A stretch of DNA of 64,000 nt from positions 124,001-188,000 of the IMG/VR virus record IMGVR_UViG_3300045974_000132; one strand, 5' to 3'. Shown here one piece after another: positions 2,344 to 50,733 of the stretch (position 1 is the stretch's first letter; each line of letters opens with the position of its first letter). Both the position numbers and the translations under genes were made by a program. The notes below the pieces were generated by a model that worked only from the letters and a program-made list of their open reading frames with translations, searched no databases and had not been told where the DNA came from.

Positions 2344-2748
2344 TTATTTCTTATGCTGATAAATAGGAGGGATGAAGATTTGCAATTCAGGCATCTTCTC
2401 TTCTGTACGTCGCAACCACTCAATGAACTCATTGGGCGGAGGCTCTGTAACAGATACCTGCATGTCTCCGATCGGGCGGCCAGGAGCCTTCCAACGTTTA
2501 ACACATGCGAACATAGACCTTGAAATCAATCCCGCGATAGCTGCATCGAGTGCTGCTTCGGAGAGCATATACTCCCCACACAATAGAGCTTTTACAGAAT
2601 TGACAGTAAGACGTTCGTTCGCCTTGATCGTGTTGTAAACCATATACACAACAATCGAATGCTTAACCGTAGAATCCTCTGACGCAAGACCACAACTGAA
2701 GCGGTGCTTCAATTCGATCTTATCTAAAACAATTGTGTCAGTGGTCAT
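2344..2748 (-). CDS. hypothetical protein
   Basis: 134 aa ORF translationally coupled to the upstream gene. Confidence 0.65.
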   Translation of the reverse strand: MTTDTIVLDKIELKHRFSCGLASEDSTVKHSIVVYMVYNTIKANERLTVNSVKALLCGEYMLSEAALDAAIAGLISRSMFACVKRWKAPGRPIGDMQVSVTEPPPNEFIEWLRRTEEKMPELQIFIPPIYQHKK

Positions 2749-3848
2749 TATGCCTCCATTAACTCACGCAAGCTTCCGAGGAAGGTTTCTACCTTGCCCG
2801 GTGTCACCTTTAGAAACTCTGCTACATACCCATTGAACTCATTTGCAGAGCAACGTGCTTGTACGTCCACGTTGTCTTCACTAGGCTTACACAGTTCTTC
2901 CTGCTTCAGCCAATCGGTGAACTCTGCGTCTTCTTTACCCATGAGCAAGGATATGAAGCGATACTTTTTCTTACGATGCTTAACTGAGTTCAACACCTCA
3001 GAGACACTGAACTCCAACTCAAACTTAGTGTGCGCATCATTGGCAACGTTTAGGATGTCGACAGGGTTGCCGTCTTCATCTACGCCCGTATGAACTTGAT
3101 TCTGTGAAACACACAACAAGCTGAATTGGTTCTCATTGTTTTTATCACTACCTACATTTACCAATCGACCACGCTTTTGTGAAGTGTGACTCTTGATAAT
3201 ATTGATGGCATGATTATGTACAGCCCTCTTAAGGTAGTTGATGATGTGAAGCTCAGTTGCTTGAGCGGGAATCAACGAGTAGAAGGATTGAAGCACCTTC
3301 GTACTAAGGTCACTGTGCATATCCTCAAAAGTAATATTGTCGGATTTAACAATGAACCGAAGCTTCTTGTAACTGATAAACTTGATGTACTTCAGAATCG
3401 AAGGATAGATACGTGTGAATAATGTGTCAATCTCCTTTGGGTCTAATAGAACATTGTTCCTACCTACTTTCCTACCTGCTTGACACAGGGCGCGACGGAA
3501 CCAACCGTTTTCACTGAACAAGGTGTACACCATGAACGTGTCGTTTCGTGTGATCCCAAGAAGCGCGCCTAAGGAGAATGCGTCTTCCTTAGTAGGGCTT
3601 TTCATTCTTGCTAGGCGTAGAGAAAACAGCTTCAGGTCGAGATTCGCATAGCGTTGATCTTGAATCGACAACCTGAATAGCTTTGCACTGTACTCACTAC
3701 AATAAGGCTTGATGTACTCCTGATATTCAAACGCAGAAGAACTACCTACGAGATACAGGATACTCTCTGCATACGTATAAACAAATGCCTCACTGTCTGG
3801 TTCAACGTACAAGCCAGCTTTTACTACCCCATATAAACCTTTTGCCAT
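2748..3848 (-). CDS. putative sigma-factor-like transcription protein
   Basis: Segment FEDMHSDLSTKVLQSF...INYLKRAVHNHAINIIKSHTSQKR resembles sigma70-family region 2; by-eye similarity only. Confidence 0.4.
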   Translation of the reverse strand: MAKGLYGVVKAGLYVEPDSEAFVYTYAESILYLVGSSSAFEYQEYIKPYCSEYSAKLFRLSIQDQRYANLDLKLFSLRLARMKSPTKEDAFSLGALLGITRNDTFMVYTLFSENGWFRRALCQAGRKVGRNNVLLDPKEIDTLFTRIYPSILKYIKFISYKKLRFIVKSDNITFEDMHSDLSTKVLQSFYSLIPAQATELHIINYLKRAVHNHAINIIKSHTSQKRGRLVNVGSDKNNENQFSLLCVSQNQVHTGVDEDGNPVDILNVANDAHTKFELEFSVSEVLNSVKHRKKKYRFISLLMGKEDAEFTDWLKQEELCKPSEDNVDVQARCSANEFNGYVAEFLKVTPGKVETFLGSLRELMEA

Positions 3849-3886
3849 ATTTTACTCCCACTGCTGATGCTGCGCTTGTTAGACAA

Positions 3887-4609
3887 TCAATAATGGAAAG
3901 TAATTTCTGCGCCTTCCTTGACGTCCTTCTTACGCTTTGCAGTGGGTGTTCGACCGATGATACCGCGTGCCATACGTGACACTATAGATACCAAGTCGTC
4001 TTCACTTGACTTCTTCTTTGTTACTTGCTTACGCATGGGTTGTTCGCTGTTGGCTACTTCATCCAACTTAGCAATATGCCCACGAATATATTCTGGCCCG
4101 CCTTCAGGGTCGTCGCGCTTCTTGGAAGCAAGCATCGCTTCACGAATAGGCTTAAACTTTGCGACAGTGAAAAGGGTATTACCTTCCTCGTCATTCAAAA
4201 CAGACAAGAACATCTTGCCAGAATCACCTACGATACGAACATACTCCTTGTCAGCATACAAAACATAACCGATCAAGAAGTTGCTAAGGTAGTTGCGATT
4301 ACTGCTACCTGTGAAACGAACATAAACTTTCTGCATGAAACGCCAGCCTGCTTTGCGCGTGTTACGCTCCGCGTGGAGTACGGCGCCTAGCGTTTGTAAT
4401 TCATTTGCAGACATGCCATGGACGGCTTCAGCCATCTTGTGCATACGATCAATCTTTTGCCCAGAACCAACCAACGTGAACATATCAGGCTTATACGTGT
4501 TGCAAGCCTTATTAGTGGGAATCTTGCCTAGATCAGAGCAGCGGCGTTCAAAACAACGCTCACGATTTAAATACAGGCAGGAACCACAGTTCAGGTTTTG
4601 TTTGCTCAT
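3887..4609 (-). CDS. hypothetical protein with N-terminal Cys cluster
   Basis: 240 aa; CxxC...C...C at the N-terminus. Confidence 0.65.
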   Translation of the reverse strand: MSKQNLNCGSCLYLNRERCFERRCSDLGKIPTNKACNTYKPDMFTLVGSGQKIDRMHKMAEAVHGMSANELQTLGAVLHAERNTRKAGWRFMQKVYVRFTGSSNRNYLSNFLIGYVLYADKEYVRIVGDSGKMFLSVLNDEEGNTLFTVAKFKPIREAMLASKKRDDPEGGPEYIRGHIAKLDEVANSEQPMRKQVTKKKSSEDDLVSIVSRMARGIIGRTPTAKRKKDVKEGAEITFHY

Positions 4610-8267: not shown

Positions 8268-8296
8268 ATTATACAGTATTCTTTACAGTTTGTCAA
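8268..8296 (-). promoter_or_regulatory. consensus sigma70 promoter
   Basis: TTGACA-N17-TATAAT on the minus strand; the spacer contains the recurrent AACTGTAAA box. Confidence 0.85.
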
Positions 8297-33205: not shown

Positions 33206-33590
33206 GCCGCTCACCTATTTTGGTAATAAGGACTCCGTCATTATCAGGAGAGTGAGCGGCTTAACAAACCAAAGTCTGTTAGTGACCCCATCCGTTTAGG
33301 TGCTGTTAGGCAGCCTTCCGGAAAGACGCATCATTCGCGGCAATTACAAGTTTAGCCCGGTTTAACGAGAGTACAATGCTCGGATCGTTCTTTATCAACT
33401 ACTCATGCCCAATCGAAACCAGGTCAGGCCCATCAGGATCGTTCTATGTATCACCCACCCCGGTGACCTCAGCCTTGCGGTAGGACCTTTCGGCACACAG
33501 AACGATTTTGGTGGACCTGGGGAGAATCGAACTCCCGTCTTGAACACTTTTATTTCAAAAGTCTCATAAGCAAAGTTGTTCCGGTAGCTA
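33206..33590 (-). ncRNA. ssrA: circularly permuted (two-piece) tmRNA
   Basis: T-arm and CAGGTCC-ACCA (33509-33540) lie upstream of the 5' strand GGGCCTG (33431); G3-U70 pair; tag ORF (A)ANDASFRKAA* at 33306-33341; outer boundaries approximate. Confidence 0.9.
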
Positions 33591-33646
33591 ATCGGCTTTA
33601 CTTACATACGATCATATTCCTTAACACGCCAATGATTACGTGTTAG

Positions 33647-34455: not shown

Positions 34456-34530
34456 TGGTTGAGGATGACGGGATCGAACCGACGACCCTCTGCTTGCAAG
34501 CAGAGGCTCTCCCAACTGAGCTAATCCCCA
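34456..34530 (-). tRNA. atypical tRNA-Ala(UGC), possibly pseudo
   Basis: U1-A72, G3-U70, ACCA; palindromic anticodon arm with a 6-nt loop TTGCAA. Confidence 0.75.
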
Positions 34531-38109: not shown

Positions 38110-38145
38110 TGGTGCCCCCGGTCGGAATCGAACTGTTAACTGAGC
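38110..38145 (-). pseudogene. 3' remnant of disrupted resident tRNA (Thr-like)
   Basis: AGCTCAGTT...GTTCGATTCCGACCGGGGGCACCA; acceptor strand complementary to GCCCCCG at 38882-38888. Confidence 0.85.
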
Positions 38146-38154
38146 TTGTGTATA

Positions 38155-38239
38155 TGGTGCTGAGGGCGGGACTCGAACCCGCGTGTCCTTTCGGAGCCGG
38201 ATTACAAATCCGGTGCTGTCGCCACTGAGCCACCTCAGC
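38155..38239 (-). tRNA. tRNA-Thr(UGU) with long variable arm
   Basis: GCTGAGG/CCTCAGC, CCGGA-TTTGTAA-TCCGG, variable arm TCC-GAAA-GGA, ACCA. Confidence 0.9.
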
Positions 38240-38242
38240 AAT

Positions 38243-38839
38243 TTAAACTTTCCTACCTCTAAAATAATCGAATGGGTTTATACCATAAGCTATAGCCCAT
38301 TTACGCACTGCGTTATCACTAACGCCGTAATGCTCACCCACCGCTACCCATGATTGCCTACTTAGGCGTTTCATAAGGTTTGCTTTACTTGGTTTTTTCT
38401 GAGTGCTACCCGCAATGAAACATTCTCGGTGAGAACTCTGACATACCGATCCGCAGTAGCTACTGTTGTCCGTAGGCATTTGACAGACTTTACAGCGGGT
38501 ACATTTTGCAAGAACTTTATCAATACAGCCGTTGTGTCGATACGAATAAATGCGGTGCTCAGAAAAGTACCCAATCGAATCAAGCCACCCATGAAGTTTG
38601 GCATGACTAGCACGGCTAAGAACTAGCAGGTTTGAAGGTGCATTATTTACCTTGTTAAGATCAAGATGGTGTACGTGTTCCGTGCGCTTTAGAGGTCGTC
38701 CTAGCGCCCGCTCTGCCACCAAGATATGCTCATAGACATACCCTTCATAAGCACCTGACTTATCGGCCCGGTCGTGAGTCGGCTGCCAAACTAGCAAGTA
38801 GCCCACATTATTTACGATCCGAACACGGTTGCGTATCAC
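38243..38839 (-). CDS. HNH homing endonuclease with C-terminal HTH
   Basis: YVYEHILVAERALGRPL...VHHLDLNKVNN...NLLVL...H; C-terminal SWVAVGEHYGVSDNAVRKW. Confidence 0.9.
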   Translation of the reverse strand: MIRNRVRIVNNVGYLLVWQPTHDRADKSGAYEGYVYEHILVAERALGRPLKRTEHVHHLDLNKVNNAPSNLLVLSRASHAKLHGWLDSIGYFSEHRIYSYRHNGCIDKVLAKCTRCKVCQMPTDNSSYCGSVCQSSHRECFIAGSTQKKPSKANLMKRLSRQSWVAVGEHYGVSDNAVRKWAIAYGINPFDYFRGRKV

Positions 38840-38877
38840 AGCGTTTCCTCTTCAAAATCAACTGCACGAATCTTCAT

Positions 38878-38888
38878 GCTACGGGGGC
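38878..38888 (-). pseudogene. 5' remnant of disrupted resident tRNA (Thr-like)
   Basis: GCCCCCGTAGC, 25 nt downstream of an AACTGTAAA box. Confidence 0.7.
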
Positions 38889-38925
38889 AAATCGTTGACT
38901 ATATGTATTATTTTTACAGTTTGTA

Positions 38926-39231
38926 TCAGCTTGCCTTCGAGGATTTACTATAGTTATTCAAGGAAGTAAGCATATCATGCCACATACCCGAACCACCGCT
39001 TGTCGCCAGCGCCACGACTACAATCAGTACGTACTCGTTAAGCTTCAGGAATGTAAACTCAGGAGGACTAGCATAACAAAGTAATCCGCCTACAATGCCA
39101 GCGATGATCTGATACACAACACCGGGAACTTCGATCTTGGCTAGATGGACGCGCTTTAGAATATCGGTTACGCGCTCGGCTGCTACGCTTGTAACTGCAA
39201 AGTATGTTATAAGCTGAATAAGATGATCCAT
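38926..39231 (-). CDS. holin-like small membrane protein
   Basis: Three hydrophobic helices; AAERVTDILK. Confidence 0.5.
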   Translation of the reverse strand: MDHLIQLITYFAVTSVAAERVTDILKRVHLAKIEVPGVVYQIIAGIVGGLLCYASPPEFTFLKLNEYVLIVVVALATSGGSGMWHDMLTSLNNYSKSSKAS

Positions 39232-40491
39232 AGTTCCACCTTTAGGGCATATCAAAGAAAGTATCTGACAACCCAATTGCTTTTGCTTTAGCTCTTAGTT
39301 CATCACTAATGCCCGGTTCGAGCGTCCAAAAATCTTCAGGAGACTTAACTACTAGATCAGCCTTAGCAAAGCAAGGTTGTCCATAGATAGCAGTAAGCTG
39401 CTTTTCAGAGCTTACATACAAGGGCTTAGAAAAGAACTTCTTGGCACCACGACGGGTCTTAAACAACAATGAGTTAGGAACGCATGTTGCATCTACCTGC
39501 TCACTTGTGTAATATCGGCCTACGAGCTTAATACGAAGTTTAGGTTTGTATCGTGCATCACCCTTAGTGATACGAATGTTGCTTATAGTGCCTATGCTGC
39601 ATGTGAGGAATTTAGTATCGGCACCTGGTATCATAACGCTATGGTCAATTTCACGAACGTAGATTACACTCATTTGAAGCCTGCATCAAAGAAGGTGTTT
39701 AGCAGCCAGCGTTGAAACCAAGACTTGGCCTGAACTAACTTCCACCCTTCTTGCTGGGCACGCCAGGACGGATGAAACACGCCGGTGTTGCACTCAATCA
39801 CAGCAGATCGTATGTCGGCACCCGAGTGATAAACACAACAAGCTTGATTGTGTTCGACAACGATACCTAGGTCGAGAAACTCAGGCTTGCGAGGTTGTAG
39901 ATTGCCGTAAGCTAGTTTTAAATTGTTAGTCATGACAACCTCTGAACGTTGTATAAAGTATGCCCATCATACTTGTAATAGTAAGGACCATAGTCAGGCA
40001 GAAGAGAGGGCACCCAGATTTTAACAACTGTCTCACCGTCATCATCGGAATACCCAAGTAAAGCTAAAGCTGCTGCCGCTGCTAGATAGTAGTTACCTGT
40101 TTTAACTGAGACCTGTTGTTCAGCACCCTCATTAATCCTAACATGAAAGGTGTTGAGTTTTAGTTTGAGTTTTTCTTCGTCATCATCAGAAGCCATCTTG
40201 AGCCTCACGTTCACGTTTATAGTATGTTAGTACCGCATACTCTTTCGATTACCCGGTAGATTCTTTAAGCCTTCACGCAACTGTTTAGCTCTAAGCTTCG
40301 GCTTCTCAGTAGGCTCAATAACTTCAGATTTAGGCAAATAGAAAGTTTGAATTCGATTGTCACGGTGGTGTGGACAATTGTAGCAACTACCTGTGATAGT
40401 TAGACTCTCGCTTTGCTTAAAGCAAGGTCCTGTGTATGCGCACCCAGTAACAGATATAGGAGAAGAACAAAACATACACTACCTCATGTGT

Positions 40492-40581
40492 TGGCGGGAG
40501 CGGTGGGATTCAAACCCACGAATGTGTTTCCACATTGCCGGTTTTCAAGACCGGTGTATTCAATCGCTCTACCACACTCCC
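40492..40581 (-). tRNA. tRNA-Ser(UGA)
   Basis: CCGGT-CTTGAAA-ACCGG, long variable arm, G73-CCA; A19/U56 instead of G19/C56. Confidence 0.92.
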
Positions 40582-40588
40582 TAAAACT

Positions 40589-41713
40589 TTATGCCACTAG
40601 AACATCCCGCAATTTTGTTAGCATTTCAACCTGATGCTTGTAATGAGCTATCTCGAAGTCCAGTTGTTGAACAGCGAGTGTTATCTTGTTGCCTGCGATA
40701 GAACTAGGCGGAAAGTATTCGCTATTTTCAAACATCGTAACGCCAGGACTTTTAAGTACAGGACGTTCAAGAGTAGCATGACCCGCAACACAGCAACCTG
40801 ATGCTTCACCGATGGGACCTAAACTAGAAAGAGTCGTTTGTTGCCACTTAGGATCAGCTGCGATCATTGCATCATCAGCGGCAGTGAAGTCTTTATGTAC
40901 AACGGGCTCAATCTCTACCTTAGGCCGCTTTGAATCATAGTAAGCAGCAACAGTAGGGTACGGAAGCAACTCAGTGTCAGTAGCGAGTGTCTTATCAAAG
41001 GGATACGCAAACTTGTTAGACCACTTGAAGTAGGGCTTACGGAAGTCTGTATCGTTCTTGTCAGCATACCCTTGCTCTACAAGCTTGGTCATAACCGAGT
41101 ACAAAGAAGTCTTTGGACATTGCGTAATGGCAACCATATCGTCAAGTGTAAGAGCAGGCTCAGCACGGAACTTGAACAGAGCAAGAGCAGCAGCCCCCAG
41201 GCTCTTAGAGCGATGCAGATCACCGAATGGGAGACGCTTGTCACCTTGCACAACCTGTGTAGAGGCTTGAACTTGCTGGGTAGACATAGTTGCAATCTCC
41301 TTCAGAACGTCAGTAGGGCTTTCTACAACAAGAGCTACTTTAGTATTTGGGCCACTATCCGCAGGAACTTCATCATGCTTACCCGGAACTACTTTGAAAG
41401 AGGTTTCAGGAAAGGTCTCACGCAAACTCTTCGGTTCAAACTTAGCTTTGGATGCAGCCCAAGGGTCTTCTTTGCTACTAGTAGGAGTGGGCTGAATAGT
41501 GTCAGCATAATCCTTAGAGGTAGTGACAAGGAAGTGTAAGCCACTCTTGTTATACATCCAGCCTTGATGCTTGGCTGCATGAAGACCTAGAGACAGTTCT
41601 TGCTTCTCCCCAAAGGTCTTACACTTGGCCCAAAGAGCTTCGGTACTAATACCGATAGGATGTTGAGCTAAGACACTACGGAGTTCATCTTCTTGATCGG
41701 TAGAAAGTTCCAT
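40589..41713 (-). CDS. hypothetical protein with putative winged-helix domains
   Basis: LTLDDMVAITQCPKTSLYSVMTKLVEQGYA is wHTH-like. Confidence 0.6.
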   Translation of the reverse strand: MELSTDQEDELRSVLAQHPIGISTEALWAKCKTFGEKQELSLGLHAAKHQGWMYNKSGLHFLVTTSKDYADTIQPTPTSSKEDPWAASKAKFEPKSLRETFPETSFKVVPGKHDEVPADSGPNTKVALVVESPTDVLKEIATMSTQQVQASTQVVQGDKRLPFGDLHRSKSLGAAALALFKFRAEPALTLDDMVAITQCPKTSLYSVMTKLVEQGYADKNDTDFRKPYFKWSNKFAYPFDKTLATDTELLPYPTVAAYYDSKRPKVEIEPVVHKDFTAADDAMIAADPKWQQTTLSSLGPIGEASGCCVAGHATLERPVLKSPGVTMFENSEYFPPSSIAGNKITLAVQQLDFEIAHYKHQVEMLTKLRDVLVA

Positions 41714-41964
41714 AACAACCCCTGTTTATTATTTTTTTGAGTATTGACGACGCTGATTAGGGCGCGTTAACACCCGTACAGCTACCTCCAGCGGAACACC
41801 CAAACAGCCACAAACTAAGGCAGCATCTTGAACAAAGCCCATTTCAGCTATTCGGATCGCTTTTTCAACTTCCCGTGCAGTTTCAAAATCAGTACGTTTC
41901 ACTTTAGCAGATTTCATAGTTATACCACATAAATTTTCTATAGAGCCTTAAATTAGAAAGCTTA

Positions 41965-42297
41965 TGTGGTAAGACTCAGAAGTGCTTAACACCGTCTGAG
42001 TCAAACCGGTGTAGCTTGCGTTGTGCCAAGCAGCAATTCTCGATGGGATAGTATTGAGAAAAGCCGCATTGACTGCACCTTGCAAACTACTGATTATTCT
42101 CGCCTAAAGCGCATGGTCATCACCCTTATATAATGTTCTATATGTATGCTTGTATATAGAACCCTACTTAGATTTAAGAACTATATTAGACGTAACATTA
42201 AGTTACCCTCCAAAAGAGTTCGCTATGAGCGTAGCGGGAGCTTCTGTTCACAAGCTTGCCGGCCCGACTCTCACGGGCAGTACCTAGGGCGAAGAGT
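41965..42297 (-). ncRNA. putative structured ncRNA region
   Basis: Non-coding, hairpin-dense (GACTCAGA/TCTGAGTC, TTCTC/GAGAA, GTTCTATAT/ATATAGAAC, CGCTA/TAGCG). Confidence 0.45.
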
Positions 42298-42303
42298 TAA
42301 AGA

Positions 42304-42738
42304 CTACTTCTTCTTTTTGCTACCGAACGTCATCTTCTTGTAGTCAGAAGGAACGACCAGAGCTTCGGGTTTGATACCACGCAACGAAGGCAGAGGCATC
42401 ACGATACCAGCCAGAGGCAAGTAGTTGGACGACTCGTTACCGTAGTCAATAGCAGTGTCAATATGAGCAAGCATACGCTGGGCTTCAGCGATAGAAGCAC
42501 GGGCATTACGAATCGCCACAACTTGCTGAAACTTGACCGTCTCTGCCTGGTCGATGATAGCGATGATCGAATCAGCAGCACGTTCTGCCTTTTCAACGTC
42601 ACGCTGCTCCAGACGCTTCTTCATAACCGCTTGCAAATGCTCAGGAAGCTTCTCGCTGACTTTGGCTTCCTTCGACAAGTCGGTGTCAGCCAGCATTGCC
42701 AAAGCTTCGAGATTGATTTGGTTGGTACAACACGACAT
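42304..42738 (-). CDS. hypothetical coiled-coil protein
   Basis: 144 aa ORF with AAGGAG SD. Confidence 0.65.
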   Translation of the reverse strand: MSCCTNQINLEALAMLADTDLSKEAKVSEKLPEHLQAVMKKRLEQRDVEKAERAADSIIAIIDQAETVKFQQVVAIRNARASIAEAQRMLAHIDTAIDYGNESSNYLPLAGIVMPLPSLRGIKPEALVVPSDYKKMTFGSKKKK

Positions 42739-42757
42739 ACGTTTTCTCCTTGGAAAG

Positions 42758-42973
42758 TTATGTTTGCATTTCAGTTAAGATTACCTTAACGCCTTTAAGA
42801 CGTTCAGCAATCTCAGGATCAGACTTAGCCAATTTCTTAGCATTGTGAGTCTCACCTAGCTGGACTACAACTTCGCAGCCTAGAGACTCTAAATAATGAG
42901 CTATAGCAGCCATTGCATAGCCTTTACCGGACTTATCAGGCCCTTCAATACTCACTCTTAGAGTATCGGGCAT
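42758..42973 (-). CDS. small P-loop protein (thymidylate-kinase-like N-terminus only)
   Basis: VSIEGPDKSGKG; only 71 aa. Confidence 0.55.
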   Translation of the reverse strand: MPDTLRVSIEGPDKSGKGYAMAAIAHYLESLGCEVVVQLGETHNAKKLAKSDPEIAERLKGVKVILTEMQT

Positions 42974-42983
42974 ATTAAACTCC

Positions 42984-43802
42984 TTATGAAGTAGCTGCCA
43001 CTATATGAATAGAAGGAGCAGCAAGTTTTGCATACAACTCAGTCACACCGTTTTCTTTATACAAGTGCGACAAGAAGGAACGAACAAAGCCTGAACGAAC
43101 AATGTCTTCTAACTGAAAGACTGTTATTGGGATGTCAAAGCCATTACGTTGGGCAAAGGCATGCAACCACAAAAGCCCACTTTCTCCCTTTAGATCGTTT
43201 TGGAAGGGATCTCCAAGAAGTACAATACGACCTGACTCATAGCGAGTAATGATTGCGATCATGTCCTCTTCGTCAAGGTTTTGAGCTTCGTCAATGATTA
43301 CAAACTTGTTGATGAATGAACGCCCACGTACATACTCAAAGGGAAGCATTTCAATCTGCCCTTTGTTAAGCATGTAATCTACTTTAGGACCAAGATGGCG
43401 ACGTAAGCTATCAAGAATAGGCATTAGCAAAGGAGTCATCTTATCTTCTTTGCTGCCTGGCAAGAAACCTACTGTTTCACCGCGCAACACATTAGCGCGT
43501 GTTAGAACAAACCCATCAACAAGGTCTGCTAAAAACATCTGAGCAGCAACCCCTGCTGCACAGTATGTCTTACCTACGCCCGCTGGCCCAATTGCCGCAC
43601 ATACTTCACTGTCCTTAAGAGCATTGATAAAATGACGCTGATTAACAGTCTTGGGAAGGAGTTCAACACGCCACGATTCGCGCTCACGAAACTTTTTATG
43701 CTTCTCACTTTCGGCTATACGCTCAAGATCCCGCTGCGTGTCACGGAGTCGACTCTTATTAGAGGACTTAGGGATACTCTTGACCTTATTGCTGCGCGCC
43801 AT
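42984..43802 (-). CDS. phoH: PhoH-like ATPase
   Basis: GPAGVGKT, GFLPG, RGRSF, IIDEAQN, GDPFQND, DIVRS. Confidence 0.95.
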   Translation of the reverse strand: MARSNKVKSIPKSSNKSRLRDTQRDLERIAESEKHKKFRERESWRVELLPKTVNQRHFINALKDSEVCAAIGPAGVGKTYCAAGVAAQMFLADLVDGFVLTRANVLRGETVGFLPGSKEDKMTPLLMPILDSLRRHLGPKVDYMLNKGQIEMLPFEYVRGRSFINKFVIIDEAQNLDEEDMIAIITRYESGRIVLLGDPFQNDLKGESGLLWLHAFAQRNGFDIPITVFQLEDIVRSGFVRSFLSHLYKENGVTELYAKLAAPSIHIVAATS

Positions 43803-43842
43803 ATTGAACCTTTGATGATATGGGAGGAAGAAACTTTAAACT

Positions 43843-44340
43843 CTGTACGACTCTCAGGTGGGGTCTAGCTTGCAAGGCCAAACCACACGAGGCAGTCGTG
43901 CACAACTACTTCTATTCACTAGAGCAAGGTAATAGCTTACCTATTAATCTATGCTAGGTTGCTCTAGCTAACCGTCCGACCTTTGGCTGTCGTCCCCGCT
44001 CAAGCTGGCTTCACTGAGTTTCCTCTCCACTGTCTCGATCTGCTGCTCCGAAGAGCTTCAACAAGGACACGCTTGACCCACTGTGCAATCTAAATACTCA
44101 GCTAGACACCTAAGGGGATAGGTACCGGCTTATGCTAGACCGTTACAAGTATTCGATAAGATTAACAACTTTCCATCGACGTACCCTAGCGCGTATAACG
44201 AAATCACGGCTCCAACATTGTAAGACTTTCCAATCATTGCTTAAACCGCTGTACCCTGGCCGGGGCCTTCAATTCTGCTATACTCGGGCTATTCGGTAAC
44301 TGACTACACAGACTACTCTTGCATTTTTCGGTGGTGGCCT
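43843..44340 (-). ncRNA. large ornate ncRNA candidate (ROOL-like)
   Basis: About 500 nt ORF-free, multi-hairpin region between tRNA-linked genes; family assignment from recalled resemblance only. Confidence 0.5.
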
Positions 44341-44601
44341 TTAATGTGCGCCTCACGGCGTTAAGGTTTCTGCAATTTTTGTATTTCTTCAAATCTACCT
44401 AAAGCTGTGGCCAGTTCAGCGCGAGCTTTACCCACTTGCTTTTCAGCAACACCGTATAGGTGCGCATGAGCAGCATCCCAAGTGTCGAAGCGTAAAATTT
44501 CGCGCATCGCAGGAGGATTAAAGTCAGACGCAACCTCTTCACGACTTATATTAGTTGATATACCTGGGTAGCGTAAAACAAATTGAATTTTAGTATCCAT
44601 G

Positions 44602-45180
44602 TTAACTACCTGCGCGTCGTTTTGCATCGTTAAACTTAGATAACTGATCTTCAGTTAAGAACTGTTCCCAGCCCTCTAAGATTAGATCCGGATGAGAAGA
44701 CAAGATTGAAACAATGTCATTCAAGTCTTTGAACTCGCGCTTCAACGTGTTAGCACCAAACAACTTTAGAACAACCATTGCCTCCTTAGAAGCAACAAGT
44801 ATCCCGTCATGGTTTACTGCGGTGTGTATCACCTTCTTAGCAACGGGTATAGGTAGTTCAATTGAAGCAGGTGTTGTAAGCTCAATATCAACCTGCGTTT
44901 TGTTTTCTTGAAAGGCACCTGGCCTATAACGCTTGAAGCCCTTGACTTCAGTAGGTACTAAAGCTTTACTAAGAAACAGAAGGTCTACGTCTTCAGTGTA
45001 ACGAGGCTTTGCATAGAAAGACATTGCAAGTCCGCCGATTAAAACACCGGGAGCTTCTGTACCTACTTTAGATTTAATCCAAGCAAGTAAAGCATGTTGC
45101 ACTTCAGGAACTAAGGCTACATGCTTTACCTCAGATACTGCCGACGCATACACAGACATGTTACGAAGTATCAGTTCCAT
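44602..45180 (-). CDS. AbiEii/MenT-like nucleotidyltransferase
   Basis: LIGGLAM...PRYTEDVDL and LKL...KDLND motifs of the DNA polymerase beta-like NTase fold. Confidence 0.75.
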   Translation of the reverse strand: MELILRNMSVYASAVSEVKHVALVPEVQHALLAWIKSKVGTEAPGVLIGGLAMSFYAKPRYTEDVDLLFLSKALVPTEVKGFKRYRPGAFQENKTQVDIELTTPASIELPIPVAKKVIHTAVNHDGILVASKEAMVVLKLFGANTLKREFKDLNDIVSILSSHPDLILEGWEQFLTEDQLSKFNDAKRRAGS

Positions 45181-45193
45181 CGTTGCTCCTAAA

Positions 45194-45274
45194 GAAAGAA
45201 GACCGGGCTTCCACCGGCAGCAAGATTAAGCCGAAGCAACCTCTCTGCGTCAGATTTGGTATCCGACGACTTTC
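45194..45274 (-). ncRNA. tRNA-like cloverleaf RNA
   Basis: GAAAG/CTTTC closing stem, CGTCGGA/TCTGACG arm, TTCG-capped arm, GCCGG-TGGAAGC-CCGGT T-arm-like. Confidence 0.45.
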
Positions 45275-45309
45275 TGGTAGGCCCGGTCAGACTTGAACTG
45301 ACGACCAAA
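45275..45309 (-). pseudogene. 3' half of disrupted resident tRNA (Ile2-like)
   Basis: TTTGGTCGTCAGTTCAAGTCTGACCGGGCCTACCA. Confidence 0.9.
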
Positions 45310-45323
45310 TACTTAAACTAACT

Positions 45324-45401
45324 TAGTGGGCCCAACTGGATTTGAACCAGTGACCCTCCGGTTATGAGCCGGGCGCTGCTAACCAACTGAGCTATAGGCC
45401 C
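45324..45401 (-). tRNA. tRNA(CAU), probably Ile2 (or elongator Met); encoded end CTA not CCA
   Basis: GGGCCTA/TGGGCCC, CCCGG-CTCATAA-CCGGA, TTCAAAT. Confidence 0.88.
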
Positions 45402-45402
45402 T

Positions 45403-45993
45403 CTAAGTAAGCTTTCGTCCTCTACCTAGCTTAGGCAATAGAGTACGGCAAATTTTGGTATAGCTGCTTTTAACATGACTATAAGTATCACCGCGCAACA
45501 TTGAGAACAGGGTAAGAGGATGCACATCTAACTCTTCTGCTAGTTCATGATGGGACAATTCATACTCAGAAAAGTATTTCCTAAGGCGTTTAACTTCACT
45601 ATCTAAAAACTTTGAATTAGGTCTAAGCTCACCTCGAGGATCAACGCGCAAACCTGTTGCCAGTGCGTGTTTCACATTACCGGAATTAGTTGTCAATTCA
45701 AGATTTGTTAATCGACAGTTAGCTTTAATCCCATCACGATGGTTTAACTGTAGTTCAGAGTCCTCTGGTATCCCCTTAAAGTGCGCCCATACAAGCCGGT
45801 GCAATTGTATCTGACGAATCTTTTTAGAGTTAGGATCTTGCCAAGATAGCTTTCGATATCCTTTTGAAGAAGGAGTCTTAGCTACTTCCTTACCTGAAAT
45901 CAAATTAAAAGCTTTACCAGACTTCGTAACTTTTAACTTACCTGAGTTTATCAGGCTAAGAAAGAAGCGTTCATTTCTAAGGTTTGCCGCCAT
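45403..45993 (-). CDS. HNH homing endonuclease with C-terminal HTH
   Basis: LHRLVWAHF...NHRDGIKANCRLTNLELTTNSGNVKHA; GELRPNSKF; LSHHELAEELDV. Confidence 0.9.
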   Translation of the reverse strand: MAANLRNERFFLSLINSGKLKVTKSGKAFNLISGKEVAKTPSSKGYRKLSWQDPNSKKIRQIQLHRLVWAHFKGIPEDSELQLNHRDGIKANCRLTNLELTTNSGNVKHALATGLRVDPRGELRPNSKFLDSEVKRLRKYFSEYELSHHELAEELDVHPLTLFSMLRGDTYSHVKSSYTKICRTLLPKLGRGRKLT

Positions 45994-46033
45994 GAGGTTA
46001 GAGCAGAGTAGTGGTATAGCTCATAAATTAGTA

Positions 46034-46065
46034 TCCTCTGCTCTGACCAACTGAGCTACAGGCCT
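46034..46065 (-). pseudogene. 5' half of disrupted resident tRNA (Ile2-like)
   Basis: AGGCCTGTAGCTCAGTTGGTCAGAGCAGAGGA; acceptor pairs with CGGGCCT at 45279-45285. Confidence 0.9.
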
Positions 46066-46074
46066 AAAACTTTA

Positions 46075-46226
46075 TAAGGTTGCTTACATTCTCGATCACC
46101 TACCACCAGTAAGTCAGTGTCGATAGTTGTGATACGCTCAACGTGCAGCCCACAACTCCTATGCACGTTAAAGCTCAACTTCATCTGGACTATACATCGA
46201 CCAGTCTAGGTGTTAAGCAAACCTTA
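46075..46226 (-). ncRNA. putative stem-closed structured RNA
   Basis: TAAGGTT(T)GCTTA(A)CA closing stem; internal AACGTGCA/TGCACGTT. Confidence 0.5.
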
Positions 46227-46496
46227 TTGGGTAGCAGCAGCTTCGTAATAATATTCCTTGAAGTGCTTTAAGAAATCTGACAGCGTAGATTTGATAGTCA
46301 CCTTAGGGCGGAAGCTATCGTCAAGCATCGTATTAAAGGTTTCTTCAACAAGAAGGATTAACTCAAACATGTCCATCGAGTCTAAATCTAAGCCTTCTAA
46401 AGTATCAGACAGACTTGCTTTGCAGGAACGATCATCTGAAAACAGTTTCAGGAATTGCTCTTGCAAAACATCTTCTTTCAGTTTTAAATTAGTCAT
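46224..46496 (-). CDS. second acyl-carrier-protein-like protein
   Basis: LDLDSMDMFELILLVEETF. Confidence 0.75.
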   Translation of the reverse strand: MTNLKLKEDVLQEQFLKLFSDDRSCKASLSDTLEGLDLDSMDMFELILLVEETFNTMLDDSFRPKVTIKSTLSDFLKHFKEYYYEAAATQ

Positions 46497-46507
46497 AGCA
46501 CAAATGA

Positions 46508-46537
46508 AGAAACAGGATGACCGAAGCCACCCTGTTT
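46508..46537 (-). terminator. terminator hairpin
   Basis: AAACAGG...CTTCGG...CCTGTTTCTT after the histone-like gene. Confidence 0.55.
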
Positions 46538-46553
46538 ATCAATACCTCGAAGG

Positions 46554-46928
46554 TTACTGACGGGACTTGCGTGAAGACTTCTTGCCATCCTTGGAACCGC
46601 GCGAAGACTTTTCGGCCTTCTTCGGTTCAGCAGCAGCGGCCGCTTTCTTAGCAGCACGGGTAGAAGTCTTGGCCGGAGCAGCAGCCTTAGCAGGAGCAGC
46701 TTTGGCAGCAGCAGCAGCAGCTTTGGCCGGGGCAGCTTTGGCGGTTGCCGCAGCAGCACGGGTAGAGCGAGCCGGAGTCTTTTCGCCAGCGGTGCCGATT
46801 GCCGAAGATTGAGCAATAGTTTGATTGACAGCTTCGACAGCATCAGCAACAGCCTTCTTGGCAGCGTCGATAGCTTTGTTGGCAGCAACCAGAGAAGAAA
46901 TAGCCTTCTTGAGAGTACGAGAATTCAT
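46554..46928 (-). CDS. histone H1-like Ala/Lys-rich protein
   Basis: AKAAPAKAA repeats. Confidence 0.75.
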   Translation of the reverse strand: MNSRTLKKAISSLVAANKAIDAAKKAVADAVEAVNQTIAQSSAIGTAGEKTPARSTRAAAATAKAAPAKAAAAAAKAAPAKAAAPAKTSTRAAKKAAAAAEPKKAEKSSRGSKDGKKSSRKSRQ

Positions 46929-47016
46929 TGTTGTATTCCTTATATATGTAAAGTTGGGGAGAACATTACGCCCTCCCCTTTAAAACAGACTACTTGGTTA
47001 GTGCAATGAGACGGAA

Positions 47017-48111
47017 TTACTCGTCGTCATCACCCCAATCTTCGTCATCTTCTTCATCATCTTCTTCATCATCTTCTTCGTCGTCGGAGTCTTCATCATC
47101 CTCGTCATCTTCTTCGTCGTCGTCGGAGTCTTCATCATCCTCGTCATCACCTTCTTCGTCATCTTCTTCATCATCTTCTTCGTCGTCGTCGGAGTCTTCA
47201 TCATCCTCGTCATCACCTTCTTCGTCGTCGGCATCTTCATCATCGCCGTCTTCGTCGTCATCACCTTCTTCTTCGTCGTCCTCGTCTTCTTCCTCAGCAG
47301 CCTTACGACCTCGCTTGGCTTTCGGAGCAGCGACTTCAGCAGCAGACGCATCTTCTTGGGAGAAGACTTGAACTTCGACGCCTGCATCATTGTTGGTGTT
47401 GATGATAACGGTTTCGCCATCAGTCGTCGTAACCTGAATCAGGCCGCCTTCCAGTTGCGAAACTTCGCCTTGATACTCGGCCAGCGTGACCGTCTTGTAA
47501 ACGTACAGCGTTGCGTCTTCACCTTCGTTGCCCTTGATAGAGACAACATCCTTCAGCGGGAAGGTAGAGACTTGGACACGCTTGCTGCGTTCCTTAGCAT
47601 GACGGAACACGACATTCTCGGTAGAGAACGAAACGAGTTGACCTTCAAGCTGAACAACCAGGCGGCTGACAAGAGCGATTTGCTGACCTTCGTCAACGCC
47701 CTTGGAAGCCTTGGAACCGCGACGCGGAGCCTTGGTAGCTTTTTCGGTTGCAGCAGCGCCTCGACGCGAAGACTTCGCCGGAGCAGCTTTTGCAGTACGT
47801 GTAGTCTTGGCAGGAGCTGCCTTTGCAGCAGCGGCACCACGACGGCCACGAGCCGGCTTTTCTTCAACTTCTTTTGCAGCACGACGACCACGTGCCGGCT
47901 TTTCAGCGGCAGCAGCCTTGCTTGAGCGAGTAGAGCGTGCCGGCTTTTCAGCAGCGGCAGCAGCGCCACGACGACCACGAGCCGGTTTTTCTTCAACTTC
48001 CTTTGGTGCGCGACGACCGCGAGTAGAGGTCTTTTCAGCGGCAGCAGCGCCACGACGGGTTGAGGTCTTTGCCGGGGCAGCCTTGGAACTACGGGTTGAT
48101 GCACGAGCCAT
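47017..48111 (-). CDS. basic-repeat / acidic-tail nucleoid-like protein
   Basis: N-terminal EKPARGRR repeats, central beta domain, C-terminal Asp/Glu tract of over 80 aa. Confidence 0.8.
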   Translation of the reverse strand: MARASTRSSKAAPAKTSTRRGAAAAEKTSTRGRRAPKEVEEKPARGRRGAAAAAEKPARSTRSSKAAAAEKPARGRRAAKEVEEKPARGRRGAAAAKAAPAKTTRTAKAAPAKSSRRGAAATEKATKAPRRGSKASKGVDEGQQIALVSRLVVQLEGQLVSFSTENVVFRHAKERSKRVQVSTFPLKDVVSIKGNEGEDATLYVYKTVTLAEYQGEVSQLEGGLIQVTTTDGETVIINTNNDAGVEVQVFSQEDASAAEVAAPKAKRGRKAAEEEDEDDEEEGDDDEDGDDEDADDEEGDDEDDEDSDDDEEDDEEDDEEGDDEDDEDSDDDEEDDEDDEDSDDEEDDEEDDEEDDEDWGDDDE

Positions 48112-48219
48112 TTGTTACTCCTTGTTGATAAAGGTTTGTTGTATTACGTTTGTTACAACTGTTATTTACAGTTTTCGGGAAAACCCAAATTGTACTTCGG
48201 GTAGAACTACATCGGACAA

Positions 48220-49290
48220 TTATTCGTTGTCGTCTTCTTCACCGGCAGCTTCTTCTTCCTCGTCCCCTTCGTCTTCATCTGCAAAGACATGAGAGAACAG
48301 AAGAATATCAGTACCGTTGACGAACAAGCTGTCAGCGTCCTTCGGACTGATCCACGGTTCCTTGCCAAGAGACACAGAATTACGTGACACCAGAGCAAAG
48401 CCTTCTTCCGGAGAAAGAAGGATGTCAAGCAATTCACGATTTTCAGGTTCTTGCAAAGAGTCGCTAGAGATAGCAACACCGACGTATGGGTTTAGAACTT
48501 CTTCGCCCATCTTTTCCAGGATACCGCGAACGAACGAGATAGCACGGATGATGAACTTGTGCGGTTCAGGCGAATCGTACAGCGCCGCTGCATTGATGAC
48601 CAAGTTGAGATTGATAACCGAATTGACAACGCTGGTCTCTTCGTCGAGAGCAACAACTGTCCAGGTCTTCAACGTGAACAGGTCTCCGAACTTGAGGTCG
48701 AAGTCAGTGCCGTCCACGACCAGTTCAAGAAGTGTTTCATCTTGAGAAAGCGGGAACTTGCGAAGAATATCACGTACCAGGCCTTCAGCGACTTGCTGCA
48801 CGATAGGTTGCAGATCGACGGGCTTGCCGATATACGAGACTTCACGATTTTGTGCAGCACGAACGATATTGACGATCTTGCCGAAGACACGACGCAGAAC
48901 GCCTTCGCTCAGATTCTTGGCGCCGTTTGCCTTCAAGAACGGATTGTGAAAGTTGAAAGTTTCTTCGGTGCCCGGTGTTACTTCCAGCGTAACAGACTTC
49001 AGTTCTTTCAAACCCTTCATGTACGGAGTACCGTAGCTGAGGGTAACGAACGGAAGAACCGTGATCGTATTGATCGAAGGAGCATTGAGAAACTTCAGCT
49101 CCTGCGCGATTTCTGCGTCGAGCGGATCGACAACAACAACGGGTACGGGAGTAGCAGCACTGATACCGCCGATAGTAGCAATCGGCTTTTCAGGAGCAGC
49201 ATCAGCAGCTTGAGCAGCCAGCTGTGCGTCAACCTTCACGAGACCCGCGTCAAAATTCACGGCACCTTGATGATGTTCAGTTTGAGACAT
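48220..49290 (-). CDS. hypothetical protein with acidic tail
   Basis: 356 aa; strong SD, biased codon usage. Confidence 0.75.
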   Translation of the reverse strand: MSQTEHHQGAVNFDAGLVKVDAQLAAQAADAAPEKPIATIGGISAATPVPVVVVDPLDAEIAQELKFLNAPSINTITVLPFVTLSYGTPYMKGLKELKSVTLEVTPGTEETFNFHNPFLKANGAKNLSEGVLRRVFGKIVNIVRAAQNREVSYIGKPVDLQPIVQQVAEGLVRDILRKFPLSQDETLLELVVDGTDFDLKFGDLFTLKTWTVVALDEETSVVNSVINLNLVINAAALYDSPEPHKFIIRAISFVRGILEKMGEEVLNPYVGVAISSDSLQEPENRELLDILLSPEEGFALVSRNSVSLGKEPWISPKDADSLFVNGTDILLFSHVFADEDEGDEEEEAAGEEDDNE

Positions 49291-49360
49291 TTAAAACTCC
49301 TTGTCGGTAAGGATAAACAAAATGTTACTAGACGATATTTACAGATTTTACTACCTGCCG

Positions 49361-49999
49361 TTATTCAATAAGAAAACGGTAATAATGCCCACTATAGTTT
49401 TCGCCGGTAGTGTAGTATTGACCCATATCAGCGATAGACTTCACAGAGGTTACAGCTAAAACTTTTATTACAAAACCTACTTCGTCGACTTCAATAGCAG
49501 ATACGGTTTTTCCTTTCTGCAAAGCTTCACCTATTCGACGAACCCAAAAGCCACGACCCCGTGTAGATTGCGTGTTGTCGCTAATAATCTTAGAATACTT
49601 CGGATAGAGTCGATTGGTAAACAACCATTCAGGCAGGTTGGTAGTAAGATCGTAAGCTCCGTTTCGCCACACACTAACTTGGCCACACGCTTTGCTATGA
49701 AGCTTCCCTGTAAGATCGTAGTGTCGAACTCGTGCACCGTATTGAATCATGTCGGGGTCGTCACCTATATTAGCATGAACAAAATAGAAATCGGCTCCAC
49801 CATCCTCCACCAGCAACACAGGTACCTTGCCACCTGTTGCAGTATAGGTTGCAACTACTTCGGCACGTTTAAGCAAAGACTTCAACTTTGCTGCGTTCTT
49901 TGCCTTGGACCTAGACCATTCTGGCTTGTACGTTCCTTCAAGCAAGTACGGCATAGAAAGAGATATGTGAGGAGTAGCAACAGTGAGAGATAGTTCCAT
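49361..49999 (-). CDS. hypothetical protein, possible GNAT-like fold
   Basis: ISDNTQSTRGRGFW motif. Confidence 0.55.
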   Translation of the reverse strand: MELSLTVATPHISLSMPYLLEGTYKPEWSRSKAKNAAKLKSLLKRAEVVATYTATGGKVPVLLVEDGGADFYFVHANIGDDPDMIQYGARVRHYDLTGKLHSKACGQVSVWRNGAYDLTTNLPEWLFTNRLYPKYSKIISDNTQSTRGRGFWVRRIGEALQKGKTVSAIEVDEVGFVIKVLAVTSVKSIADMGQYYTTGENYSGHYYRFLIE

Positions 50000-50018
50000 A
50001 TTGCATCCTTTAAATAAG

Positions 50019-50030
50019 TGGTGCCCGTAG
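50019..50030 (-). pseudogene. 3' remnant of disrupted resident tRNA (Leu-like)
   Basis: CTACGGGCACCA; CGGGC pairs with GCCCG at 50625-50629. Confidence 0.6.
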
Positions 50031-50038
50031 CACTTTAT

Positions 50039-50123
50039 TGGTGGGCGGAAAGGGACTCGAACCCTTACACCTTGCGGCTGCGGGTTTTAAGCCCGCTGCG
50101 TCTACCGATTTCGCCACCCGCCC
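50039..50123 (-). tRNA. tRNA-Leu(UAA)
   Basis: GGGCGGG/TCCGCCC, GCGGG-CTTAAAA-CCCGC, variable arm, ACCA. Confidence 0.95.
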
Positions 50124-50595
50124 TTAACATCTATAGCCAGTTAGAGCATTACCGTACTGGTTTGCTTTGAAGTACCTAGAGCGGCATGAGTGGGAGCAGA
50201 ATGCAACCTTAACACGCTTCTTAGAATAAACTTCTCGAACAAACCCAGAACACTTTGCACAATAAAGCTTTACTGGTTTTCCGTAAAGCTGGACTTGCTG
50301 CTTTTTACGATTCTTAGTTCCAGATAGCAACTGAAGATTACGAAACTTATCATTTCTAAAGTTGCCGTCTTTGTGATCTACTTCTTCAGCGGAAGTTAAA
50401 AACCGACCAAGCTTTATTTCCAACTCTAGCATATTGCCTAGCTGTCCGTTTCACGCTATCGTACAGGATAACGATCTTTCGTCCATCTTTTCTTTTATAC
50501 GGGCCGTACACCTTAAACGCATTTCCGTACAAAGCAACAAAGTCAGTGTAAAAAGTTGAGTACGGCTTACACTTTGTTTTAGACTTTGCTGGCAT
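50124..50595 (-). pseudogene. frameshifted HNH homing endonuclease
   Basis: N part GPYKRKDGRK...QYAR (50595) and C part LEIKLGRFL...VDHKDGNFRND...NLQLL are in different frames, shifting near 50425. Confidence 0.8.
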
Positions 50596-50608
50596 TTTGG
50601 TCCTTTGT

Positions 50609-50629
50609 TACCAATTTCCCCACCCGGGC
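50609..50629 (-). pseudogene. 5' remnant of disrupted resident tRNA-Leu
   Basis: GCCCGGGTGGGGAAATTGGTA, a Leu-type acceptor and D-arm start. Confidence 0.75.
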
Positions 50630-50733
50630 AGTCAAGGAAGCTCTAACTCTTTTCATCTAAATCAGATGTAACGAATTAGTATTTACAAGTTGAAAGAAAC
50701 TACCTTGTATTTCATTCCCTTTGTTTACAGTTT

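Follow-up and report, generated by a model that had tools for sequence, protein, structure and literature searches.

HNH endonuclease genes paired with intact tRNA genes inside broken tRNA genes of a viral contig: probable intron-less homing elements

Introduction

The stretch of DNA analysed here (hereafter referred to as the window) comprises positions 124,001 to 188,000 of the IMG/VR virus record IMGVR_UViG_3300045974_000132. This window of 64 kilobases (kb) is a part of a 286-kb viral contig from a giant phage, has a G+C content of ~45% and carries nearly all its genes on the minus strand. Three units on the minus strand share one architecture, in which a 5' piece of a transfer RNA (tRNA) gene is followed by an open reading frame (ORF) for an HNH endonuclease, an intact tRNA gene and a 3' tRNA piece with a terminal CCA. 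This three-copy arrangement had been proposed in an initial annotation of the sequence and is confirmed at the positions at which it had been placed. The units are referred to here as cassettes c1, c2 and c3 and their ORFs as HNH1, HNH2 and HNH3; the intact tRNA of each unit is termed the carried tRNA and the interrupted one the resident tRNA. All the cassette features described below lie on the minus strand.

Methods

Relatives of the window phage were searched for using megablast (whole region), tblastn (flanking protein), scans of IMG/VR for HNH1, HNH2 and PhoH, and a scan of the JGI metagenomes for PhoH. Apart from the contig of the window itself, these searches yielded nothing but distant PhoH genes; no close relative was found among the GenBank phages, IMG/VR or the JGI metagenomes, and the phage is a singleton in IMG/VR, the GenBank phages and the JGI contigs. 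Relatives of the cassettes (loci numbered with the prefix L) were reached solely through a large protein collection, and eleven loci beyond the window were examined for the nesting of an HNH ORF that abuts a tRNA.

Intact tRNAs were identified with ARAGORN and with Rfam covariance models at permissive thresholds. Since these models do not report internal half-matches and leave the tRNA pieces unscored, the pieces were judged by direct reading, BLAST and comparison with the relatives.

Results

The cassettes are minimal in content, each consisting of a ribosome-binding site, an HNH gene and a tRNA gene (~650-780 base pairs, bp), and sit without a promoter of their own behind the 5' part of the resident tRNA. 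The end of the ORF abuts the carried tRNA, with 3, 1 and 0 nucleotides (nt) between the stop codon and the tRNA in c1, c2 and c3, respectively, in agreement with the 0-3 nt noted previously, and the carried tRNAs named at that time, Thr(UGU), CAU and Leu(UAA), were all recovered by ARAGORN and Rfam. The 5' pieces (24 to 38 nt) lie directly upstream of the HNH ribosome-binding site and contain an acceptor strand and a D arm, with the 5' strand of the anticodon stem also retained in c1 and c2. The 3' pieces lie a few to ~45 nt downstream of the carried tRNA and contain an acceptor strand, a discriminator A and CCA. The flanking pieces are two complementary halves of one gene and not duplicates. 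The acceptor strands, all of which had been described as complementary, pair at 7/7 positions in c1 and through six Watson-Crick pairs and one G-U pair in c2, with only 5/7 positions pairing in c3. Random placements in the window give such complementarity by chance in 3% (7 bp) and 10% (5 bp) of cases, and all three matches jointly at a level of ~1e-4, the D-arm and T-arm motifs not yet counted. HNH and tRNA were the only genes in the cassettes; neither an integrase gene nor a direct repeat of a tRNA 3' end was found.

Matches to the HNH_3 domain and to HNH families of PHROG were found for all three ORFs (PHROG down to 2e-29), and no GIY-YIG domain was found in them. HNH1 and HNH3 share a catalytic core of 43 residues alone and HNH2 is unrelated to them beyond the motif; the three cassettes are therefore regarded as distinct elements.

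The 5' piece of c1 (38851..38888) runs from the acceptor strand GCCCCCG through the D arm and the 5' side of the anticodon stem as far as the first part of the loop, is directly followed by the HNH ribosome-binding site and is complementary at 7/7 positions to 38114-38120. HNH1 (38243..38839), a free-standing HNH endonuclease of 198 amino acids with a GTG start, matches Pfam PF13392 (HNH_3; 5e-9) and PHROG 15471 (2e-27). The carried tRNA-Thr(UGU) (38155..38239; ARAGORN, Rfam 62.4 bits) is 85 nt long and has an extra 3-bp variable arm with a GAAA loop. Such an arm is the normal shape for Leu, Ser and Tyr tRNAs only and is abnormal for Thr, a point that amends the earlier description of this tRNA. 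The 3' piece (38110..38139) comprises a possible 3' strand of the anticodon stem (TTAAC), the T loop, the 3' strand of the T stem (CCGAC), the acceptor strand CGGGGGC and ACCA; the variable loop is missing from it, as is the 5' side of the T stem. An additional base seems to be present in the left part of the resident anticodon loop, TTTTG in place of the expected TTTG (38853-38857 in the window; ~1439-1444 in L036), with TTTAAC at ~1352-1357 in L042; it could be a footprint of insertion and repair, or a pseudogene slip.

In c2, the 5' piece (46034..46065) corresponds to nt 1-31 of the resident tRNA and has orthologous pieces in L027 and L033; its best full-length phage matches in BLAST are CAU tRNAs (90-93%), and CAU tRNAs are the best full-length matches of the 3' piece as well. 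A left-end spacer (45994..46033), conserved in an alignment of the window, L027 and L033, separates this piece from HNH2 (45403..45993), a free-standing HNH endonuclease of 196 amino acids (PF13392, 7e-11; PHROG 59, 2e-29) from a family distinct from those of HNH1 and HNH3 and without significant similarity to HNH1. The carried tRNA(CAU) (45326..45401; ARAGORN, Rfam 59.4 bits) is of the Met or Ile2 type and has no encoded CCA. The 3' piece (45275..45308) contains the variable loop, a T arm (GTCAG/CTGAC), the acceptor strand CGGGCCT and ACCA; between them, the two halves lack the loop of the anticodon arm and the 3' side of its stem. In the 5' piece, the 3' side of the D stem together with the 5' side of the anticodon stem can pair, as GAGCAGAG/CTCTGCTC in the window, with a conserved, GCTCT-containing stretch just before the HNH start (45994-46041 in the window and 2945-2990 in L027; also in L033), and this pairing may control HNH translation or transcript processing. 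Directly downstream of the c2 3' piece, the window has a gene for an AbiEii-like nucleotidyltransferase (44602-45180; Pfam 7e-7), which L027 lacks, its 3' piece being followed by the next gene.

The resident of c3 is of the Leu type, its 5' piece (50606..50629) being 24 nt long with the acceptor strand GCCCGGG and a type-II D arm. HNH3 (50124..50595), previously taken as a whole gene, is frameshifted near 50422-50429 and occurs as two pieces (50595..50386 and 50432..50124) that align to consecutive parts of intact homologs; the C-terminal piece matches PF13392 at 2.7e-4, which is below the cut-off. The carried tRNA-Leu(UAA) (50039..50123; ARAGORN, Rfam 59.5 bits) is followed by the 12-nt 3' remnant CTACGGGCACCA (50019..50030), in which the 5/7 complementarity resides.

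A promoter-like motif, AAACTGTAAA, occurs eight times in the window, in all cases on the minus (coding) strand, against 0.38 expected occurrences (10-nt sites at 8282, 28533, 31120, 37337, 38913, 48165, 50724 and 50885). It lies 25 nt upstream of the c1 5' piece (38913..38922), 95 nt upstream of the c3 5' piece (50724..50733) and 19 nt before an intact tRNA-Thr(AGU) gene, precedes tRNA genes and ORFs, and often has A/T-rich sequence after it. The motif probably represents a promoter element specific to the phage and, since it precedes c1, c3 and an intact tRNA gene, the cassettes are probably expressed from the promoter of the resident tRNA.

The initial annotation had envisaged a reconstructed resident tRNA gene. 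When the flanking pieces were joined at all junctions and submitted to ARAGORN, no clean tRNA was obtained for c1 and c3, and the calls for c2 shifted with the junction. The halves in the window are wrecks rather than exons; of the two tRNA genes in each unit, only the carried one is intact, the resident one having been destroyed. The view of the units as intron-less was upheld, as no group I or group II intron core was detected in or around the three window cassettes by Rfam (E<=1 to E<=10), nor in the cassettes of phiKZ, O18-011, L027, L033, L036, L039, L041 and L044. This negative result carries weight because the same searches detect group I introns in L034 (59 bits) and L050 (72 bits).

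The arrangement of an HNH ORF that abuts a tRNA between complementary halves recurs in unrelated phages (eleven further loci examined). The best GenBank relatives of HNH1 are phiKZ gp296 and the Psa21 HNH (36-39% identical, gp296 at 36%), and homologs that are 53-56% identical are present in L036, L039 and L041. In L036, L039/L040 and L041 a 5' half, equivalent to the c1 piece, is followed by the HNH, an extra-arm tRNA-Thr(UGU) and a 3' half. The acceptor pairs GCTGGCA/TGCCAGC, GCCAGTT/AACCGGC and GCTGGCT/AGCCAGC of these relatives differ between the loci but remain complementary. All these residents have G1:C72, C2:G71 and A73, which we take to be the identity set of the threonyl-tRNA synthetase, and TAA (positions 36-38) is kept at the right junction in two of the c1-type relatives. 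L041 has a second HNH gene (2427-3026), 38% identical to HNH1; tandem occurrence of the elements is thus possible, as this gene starts ~170 nt past the 3' half of the first cassette.

Homologs of HNH2 in the same nesting are 85% (Logan contigs L027-L032) and 83% (L033) identical to it; the contexts of its GenBank phage relatives (~30% identical) are varied and uninformative. In L033, resident positions 1-31 and 39-76 remain and the anticodon loop alone has been replaced. The T stem of the c2-type resident is GTCAG/CTGAC, CAGGG/CCCTG or GTGGG/CCCAC in the three phages and the pair 1:72 is A:T or G:C, i.e. the changes are compensatory. The carried tRNA(CAU) is identical at 75/76 nt between the window and L027, and the flanking proteins are 34%, 55% and 75% identical, as against 85% for the HNH. 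In L034, a 226-kb JGI contig, an HNH2 homolog is followed by a tRNA(CAU) that itself holds a group I intron (3607-3880, 59 bits). A second group I intron (4268-4477) lies ~400 nt downstream of the first in this contig.

Relatives of c3 were found in L044, L045, L047 and L049. L044 has an intact HNH ortholog of 158 amino acids (81% and 85% identical to the two HNH3 pieces), a tRNA-Leu(UAA), 16 nt of the 5' piece and a 3' remnant, CCCGGGCACCA, with 7/7 complementarity, and L049 keeps a Leu 5' half of 32 nt. Between the window c3 and its relative, identity is 43% and 56% for the proteins right beside the cassette and 77% for the one after these, as against 81-85% for the HNH.

Filled and empty forms of one site are available from cultured phages. 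In phiKZ, a tRNA-Asn(GUU) gene is split within the anticodon-loop positions 36-38 by a 775-bp insert that contains an 87-nt extra-arm tRNA-Asn(GUU), a hairpin and gp296 (HNH). Phages LC and KEN51 have an uninterrupted 76-nt tRNA-Asn gene at this site and flanks that differ from those of phiKZ at 8 of ~1440 nt (>99% identical), and joining of the phiKZ flanks in silico yields a tRNA-Asn(GTT) in ARAGORN. In GenBank, the phiKZ-type site is filled in ~9 genomes and empty in >20. Phage Churi (L009) has the same left junction and the same extra-arm tRNA in the second tRNA-Asn paralog (~300-440), without an HNH and without a 3' half; the target would thus be the tRNA sequence and not the genomic neighbourhood. 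The Churi locus is apparently joined at a terminator-like hairpin that is common to the cassette and the resident locus. Homologs of HNH3 that are 31-42% identical to it lie immediately 5' of a tRNA. In the Kuravirus O18-011, an HNH3 homolog and a tRNA-Arg(UCU) replace positions 28-65 of a tRNA-Arg(UCU) gene, and Shigella phage SGF2 has the same tRNA-Arg(UCU) gene intact, with flanking genes as in O18-011. The uninterrupted alleles envisaged by the initial annotation were accordingly found at homologous sites (LC and KEN51 for phiKZ, SGF2 for O18-011), and none was found for the window's own sites.

All the sampled contexts of the HNH1 clade lie in tRNA clusters (phiKZ, Psa21, pW2, Izhevsk, L036, L039, L041, L042, L052 and L050). 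Besides the order 5' half, HNH, tRNA, 3' half, the clade shows the order 5' half, tRNA, HNH, 3' half (phiKZ, L042, and L052 in a decayed form). In L050, the HNH gene lies in a group I intron that interrupts a tRNA(CAU) between positions 36 and 37, the joined exons giving tRNA-Met(CAT), which places the habitat of the clade in the anticodon loop of tRNA genes. A protein tree of 17 HNHs was poorly resolved, with only the c3-type clade and two small pairs well supported; hence, no number of architecture changes is claimed.

The extra-arm tRNAs form a family (window 38155-38239; L006 2321-2407; L007 2345-2432; L036 2085-2171; L039 2081-2167; L041 2092-2177) of 85-88 nt with Thr(UGU) or Asn(GUU) anticodons and a 3-bp variable arm capped by a tetraloop. 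In an alignment, compensatory changes were observed in 16 of the 23 pairs, including all three pairs of the extra arm, and no pair was broken. The acceptor of the phiKZ extra-arm tRNA has U1:A72, G2:C71, G3:C70 and G73.

Discussion

Each unit is quite probably an intron-less homing element that consists of an HNH gene and a tRNA gene and is lodged around the anticodon loop of a resident tRNA gene whose anticodon matches that of the carried tRNA; the earlier interpretation of the units as tRNA-replacing homing cassettes is thus supported. The cassettes are better conserved than their flanks (81-85% for the HNH, against the values for the flanking proteins), and are present or absent at otherwise near-identical homologous sites. 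On the evidence of the sequences, the simplest account would be a horizontally spreading cassette that has repeatedly invaded diverged, functional alleles of one and the same tRNA gene. The proposed compensation by the carried tRNA is supported by the agreement of the anticodons. The idea that the broken and the carried tRNAs are of the same isotype holds for Asn/Asn, Arg/Arg, Leu/Leu and CAU/CAU (as best matches) and, by the Thr-type acceptor, for c1; the anticodon of the c1 resident is not readable with certainty and L034 is possibly mismatched.

By analogy with free-standing homing endonucleases, a co-infecting phage that lacks the cassette would have its intact tRNA gene nicked or cut by the HNH at or close to the anticodon loop. 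Repair by recombination from the cassette-bearing genome would then copy the cassette in, with the tRNA halves and the flanks serving as homology arms. The occupied allele would be immune because its target is split; the carried tRNA would owe its immunity to its different stems and, in the HNH1 clade, to the extra variable arm as well. The carried tRNA would restore the lost decoding and thereby make the insertion cheap without splicing. RNase P cleavage at the 5' end of the tRNA, 0-3 nt past the stop codon, probably trims the HNH message and limits HNH expression, as proposed for segB (PMC2330249). Decay would follow fixation, as suggested by c3 with its frameshifted HNH and shrunken halves (24 and 12 nt) and by c1 with an internal deletion in its 3' half.

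Several points weigh against this reading. Both DNA cutting by this HNH clade and its target site are predictions. The covariation in the c2-type halves could reflect a function that these halves have retained and not independent invasions. The resident loop of c1 reads TTTTG, with a literal anticodon UUG (Gln) and not UGU, and L036 has the same extra T. The 5' piece of c1 matches no known phage tRNA in BLAST, and its assignment to Thr therefore draws on the acceptor identity and the relatives. Rescue is not universal, as the 5' piece of L034 has an acceptor that is presumably Lys-like, by comparison with the E. coli tRNA-Lys, whereas its carried tRNA has CAU, and in L042 and L052 the carried tRNA is a weak or chimeric one (32 bits). 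Since the window phage has no close relative, an empty allele was not found for its own c1, c2 and c3 sites, where only filled relatives are known. The cassette contexts are a hand-picked sample and not a census.

An alternative that seems unlikely is that the carried tRNA is hitch-hiking cargo. An ordinary free-standing endonuclease of tRNA arrays would then co-convert an adjacent tRNA, or one useful in itself (for codon supply or for resistance to tRNA-cleaving defences), and the anticodons would match through recombination via the shared anticodon arm rather than because of compensation. SegB indeed moves flanking tRNA genes without nesting, and segB is linked to tRNAs of many isotypes (PMC2330249, PMC13096335); phage tRNAs are documented as a counter-defence (PMC13096335). 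The resident and the carried anticodon arms are also very similar in the comparison of O18-011 and SGF2, and L034 may pair different isotypes. However, the boundaries are tight in more than ten independent loci, with the ribosome-binding site right after the 5' piece and the 3' piece ~10-50 nt from the carried tRNA, and the anticodons agree in all the cases that are readable on both sides (Asn, Arg, Leu twice and CAU). Homologous recombination between tRNAs would, moreover, yield chimeric full-length tRNAs and not a nested complete tRNA.

It is far less probable that the interrupted tRNA is still made. A ribozyme that escaped recognition, or protein-mediated cutting and ligation, would then remove the insert or join the halves in trans, such that the cassettes would be unusual tRNA introns. 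The break in the anticodon loop with both halves complete, as seen in phiKZ and L033, is at the usual intron site, the T stem and the pair 1:72 covary in the c2-type halves, the clade member in L050 is truly intron-encoded and a weak tRNA-like match extends over the 3' piece of L027. Against these stand the absence of a group I or group II core from every cassette searched, though such cores were detected in L034 and L050, and the c1, c2 and c3 halves, which are without essential parts and give no clean tRNA on joining. The insert also holds a complete tRNA whose processing would cut the precursor, and no tRNA-splicing endonuclease is known from bacteria.

That decaying tRNA arrays left fragments between which HNH genes lie by coincidence is hardly credible, since, although tRNA pseudogenes are common in phage arrays (e.g. 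Izhevsk and pW2) and acceptor complementarity alone is not rare (3-10% per site), the joint figure of ~1e-4 for the three sites precedes any D-arm and T-arm features, the nesting recurs in relatives with different yet complementary acceptors and the exact empty sites for phiKZ and O18-011 already contradict chance.

Two known types of insertion were considered for the window and set aside: a group I intron in the tRNA anticodon loop, for which there is no RF00028 match in the window or the relatives of its cassettes and the window halves do not join, and an integrase-borne tRNA island, as the cassettes consist of HNH and tRNA and their flanks are complementary halves and not repeats.

The homing elements proposed here resemble several known systems in part, and T4 SegB comes nearest to them. 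T4 SegB (GIY-YIG) and the T5 enzymes F-TflI/II/IV (HNH) are likewise encoded by free-standing endonuclease genes in tRNA clusters, the end of the ORF lying at the 5' end of a tRNA; the stop codon of segB, whose product cuts tRNA genes, abuts a tRNA, and its homing brings neighbouring tRNA genes into the recipient (PMC2330249, PMC13096335). SegB differs in being a GIY-YIG enzyme that recognises a T-loop motif present in many tRNAs and whose gene has intact genes on either side. Neither a nested split tRNA nor a same-anticodon substitute is described for SegB or the F-Tfl enzymes, whereas the window element lies inside one tRNA gene, in the anticodon loop, and its resident is destroyed. For intron-less homing of T4 SegF and SegG, PMC13096335 cites Belle, Landthaler and Shub (2002). 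In that system the sensitive allele in a related phage is reportedly cut and the endonuclease gene co-converted with a resistant target allele. That resistant allele is an ortholog acquired by homologous exchange; the window cassettes carry a non-orthologous tRNA, with a partly different scaffold, nested in the wreck of the target.

I-Ssp6803I is a homing endonuclease encoded by a group I intron in the anticodon loop of a cyanobacterial tRNA-fMet. Such intron-encoded enzymes, including those of L050 and L034, share anticodon-loop DNA as their target, the L050 member of the HNH1 clade being at 36/37, but their damage is undone by self-splicing, whereas the window cassettes are without a ribozyme core and have a second tRNA instead. 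Aeh1 nrdA/mobE is an example of a gene split by the insertion of an endonuclease gene. As in the fractured genes with split inteins (PMC2677866), a free-standing endonuclease gene interrupts the host gene and no intron is involved. Function is then preserved through assembly of the two gene products or through trans-splicing inteins, while the halves in the window are given up and a substitute gene takes their place. The synthetic HomeR and cleave-and-rescue drives (PMC7968924) are similar in that their nuclease inactivates an important gene, of which the drive itself brings a functional copy that resists cleavage; they rely on engineered Cas9 in insects, whereas the window element would be natural, protein-guided and phage-borne, with a tRNA as the rescued gene. 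No description of an endonuclease gene nested with a same-anticodon substitute in a broken tRNA gene was found in the open-access literature.

A wider generalisation is offered tentatively. The cassettes may belong to a widespread natural 'home-and-rescue' class, in which one HNH clade acts on anticodon-loop DNA and the damage is offset either by a group I intron or by a redesigned, cleavage-immune tRNA with the same anticodon and often an extra arm (Thr, Asn, possibly Lys and Val), driving turnover and scaffold diversity of phage tRNA genes, including those of phiKZ, a model phage. We regard this as a real possibility that falls slightly short of being probable.

Homing endonucleases are thought to enter functional genes by means of an intron or an intein, or else to sit between genes. 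The cassettes suggest a third route, namely to bring a spare copy of the target gene, and the same design principle as that of the engineered home-and-rescue drives has apparently evolved in phages. If true, this would explain the tRNA fragments and odd tRNA scaffolds in phage genomes, the frequent occurrence of HNH genes in phage tRNA arrays and the exchange of phage tRNA sets. The question is directly testable in phiKZ and its cultured relatives, which provide both filled and empty alleles. There is also a bearing on annotation: at present the split halves, like the 85-87-nt 'tRNA-Asn' and 'tRNA-Thr' genes, go unannotated or look like errors.

Other features of the window

Seven tRNAs and a permuted transfer-messenger RNA (tmRNA) were identified in the window by ARAGORN and Rfam. 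The tmRNA is of the two-piece type (33215-33604; Rfam tmRNA_permuted, 89 bits) with the ARAGORN tag peptide AANDASFRKAA, and L039 has one too. A tRNA with a four-base anticodon (tgca) in an anticodon loop of 8 nt was called by ARAGORN at 34456-34530 (Rfam 49.7 bits). A match to the twister-sister ribozyme at 42215-42295 is sub-threshold (30 bits against a gathering score of 34, E = 0.007).

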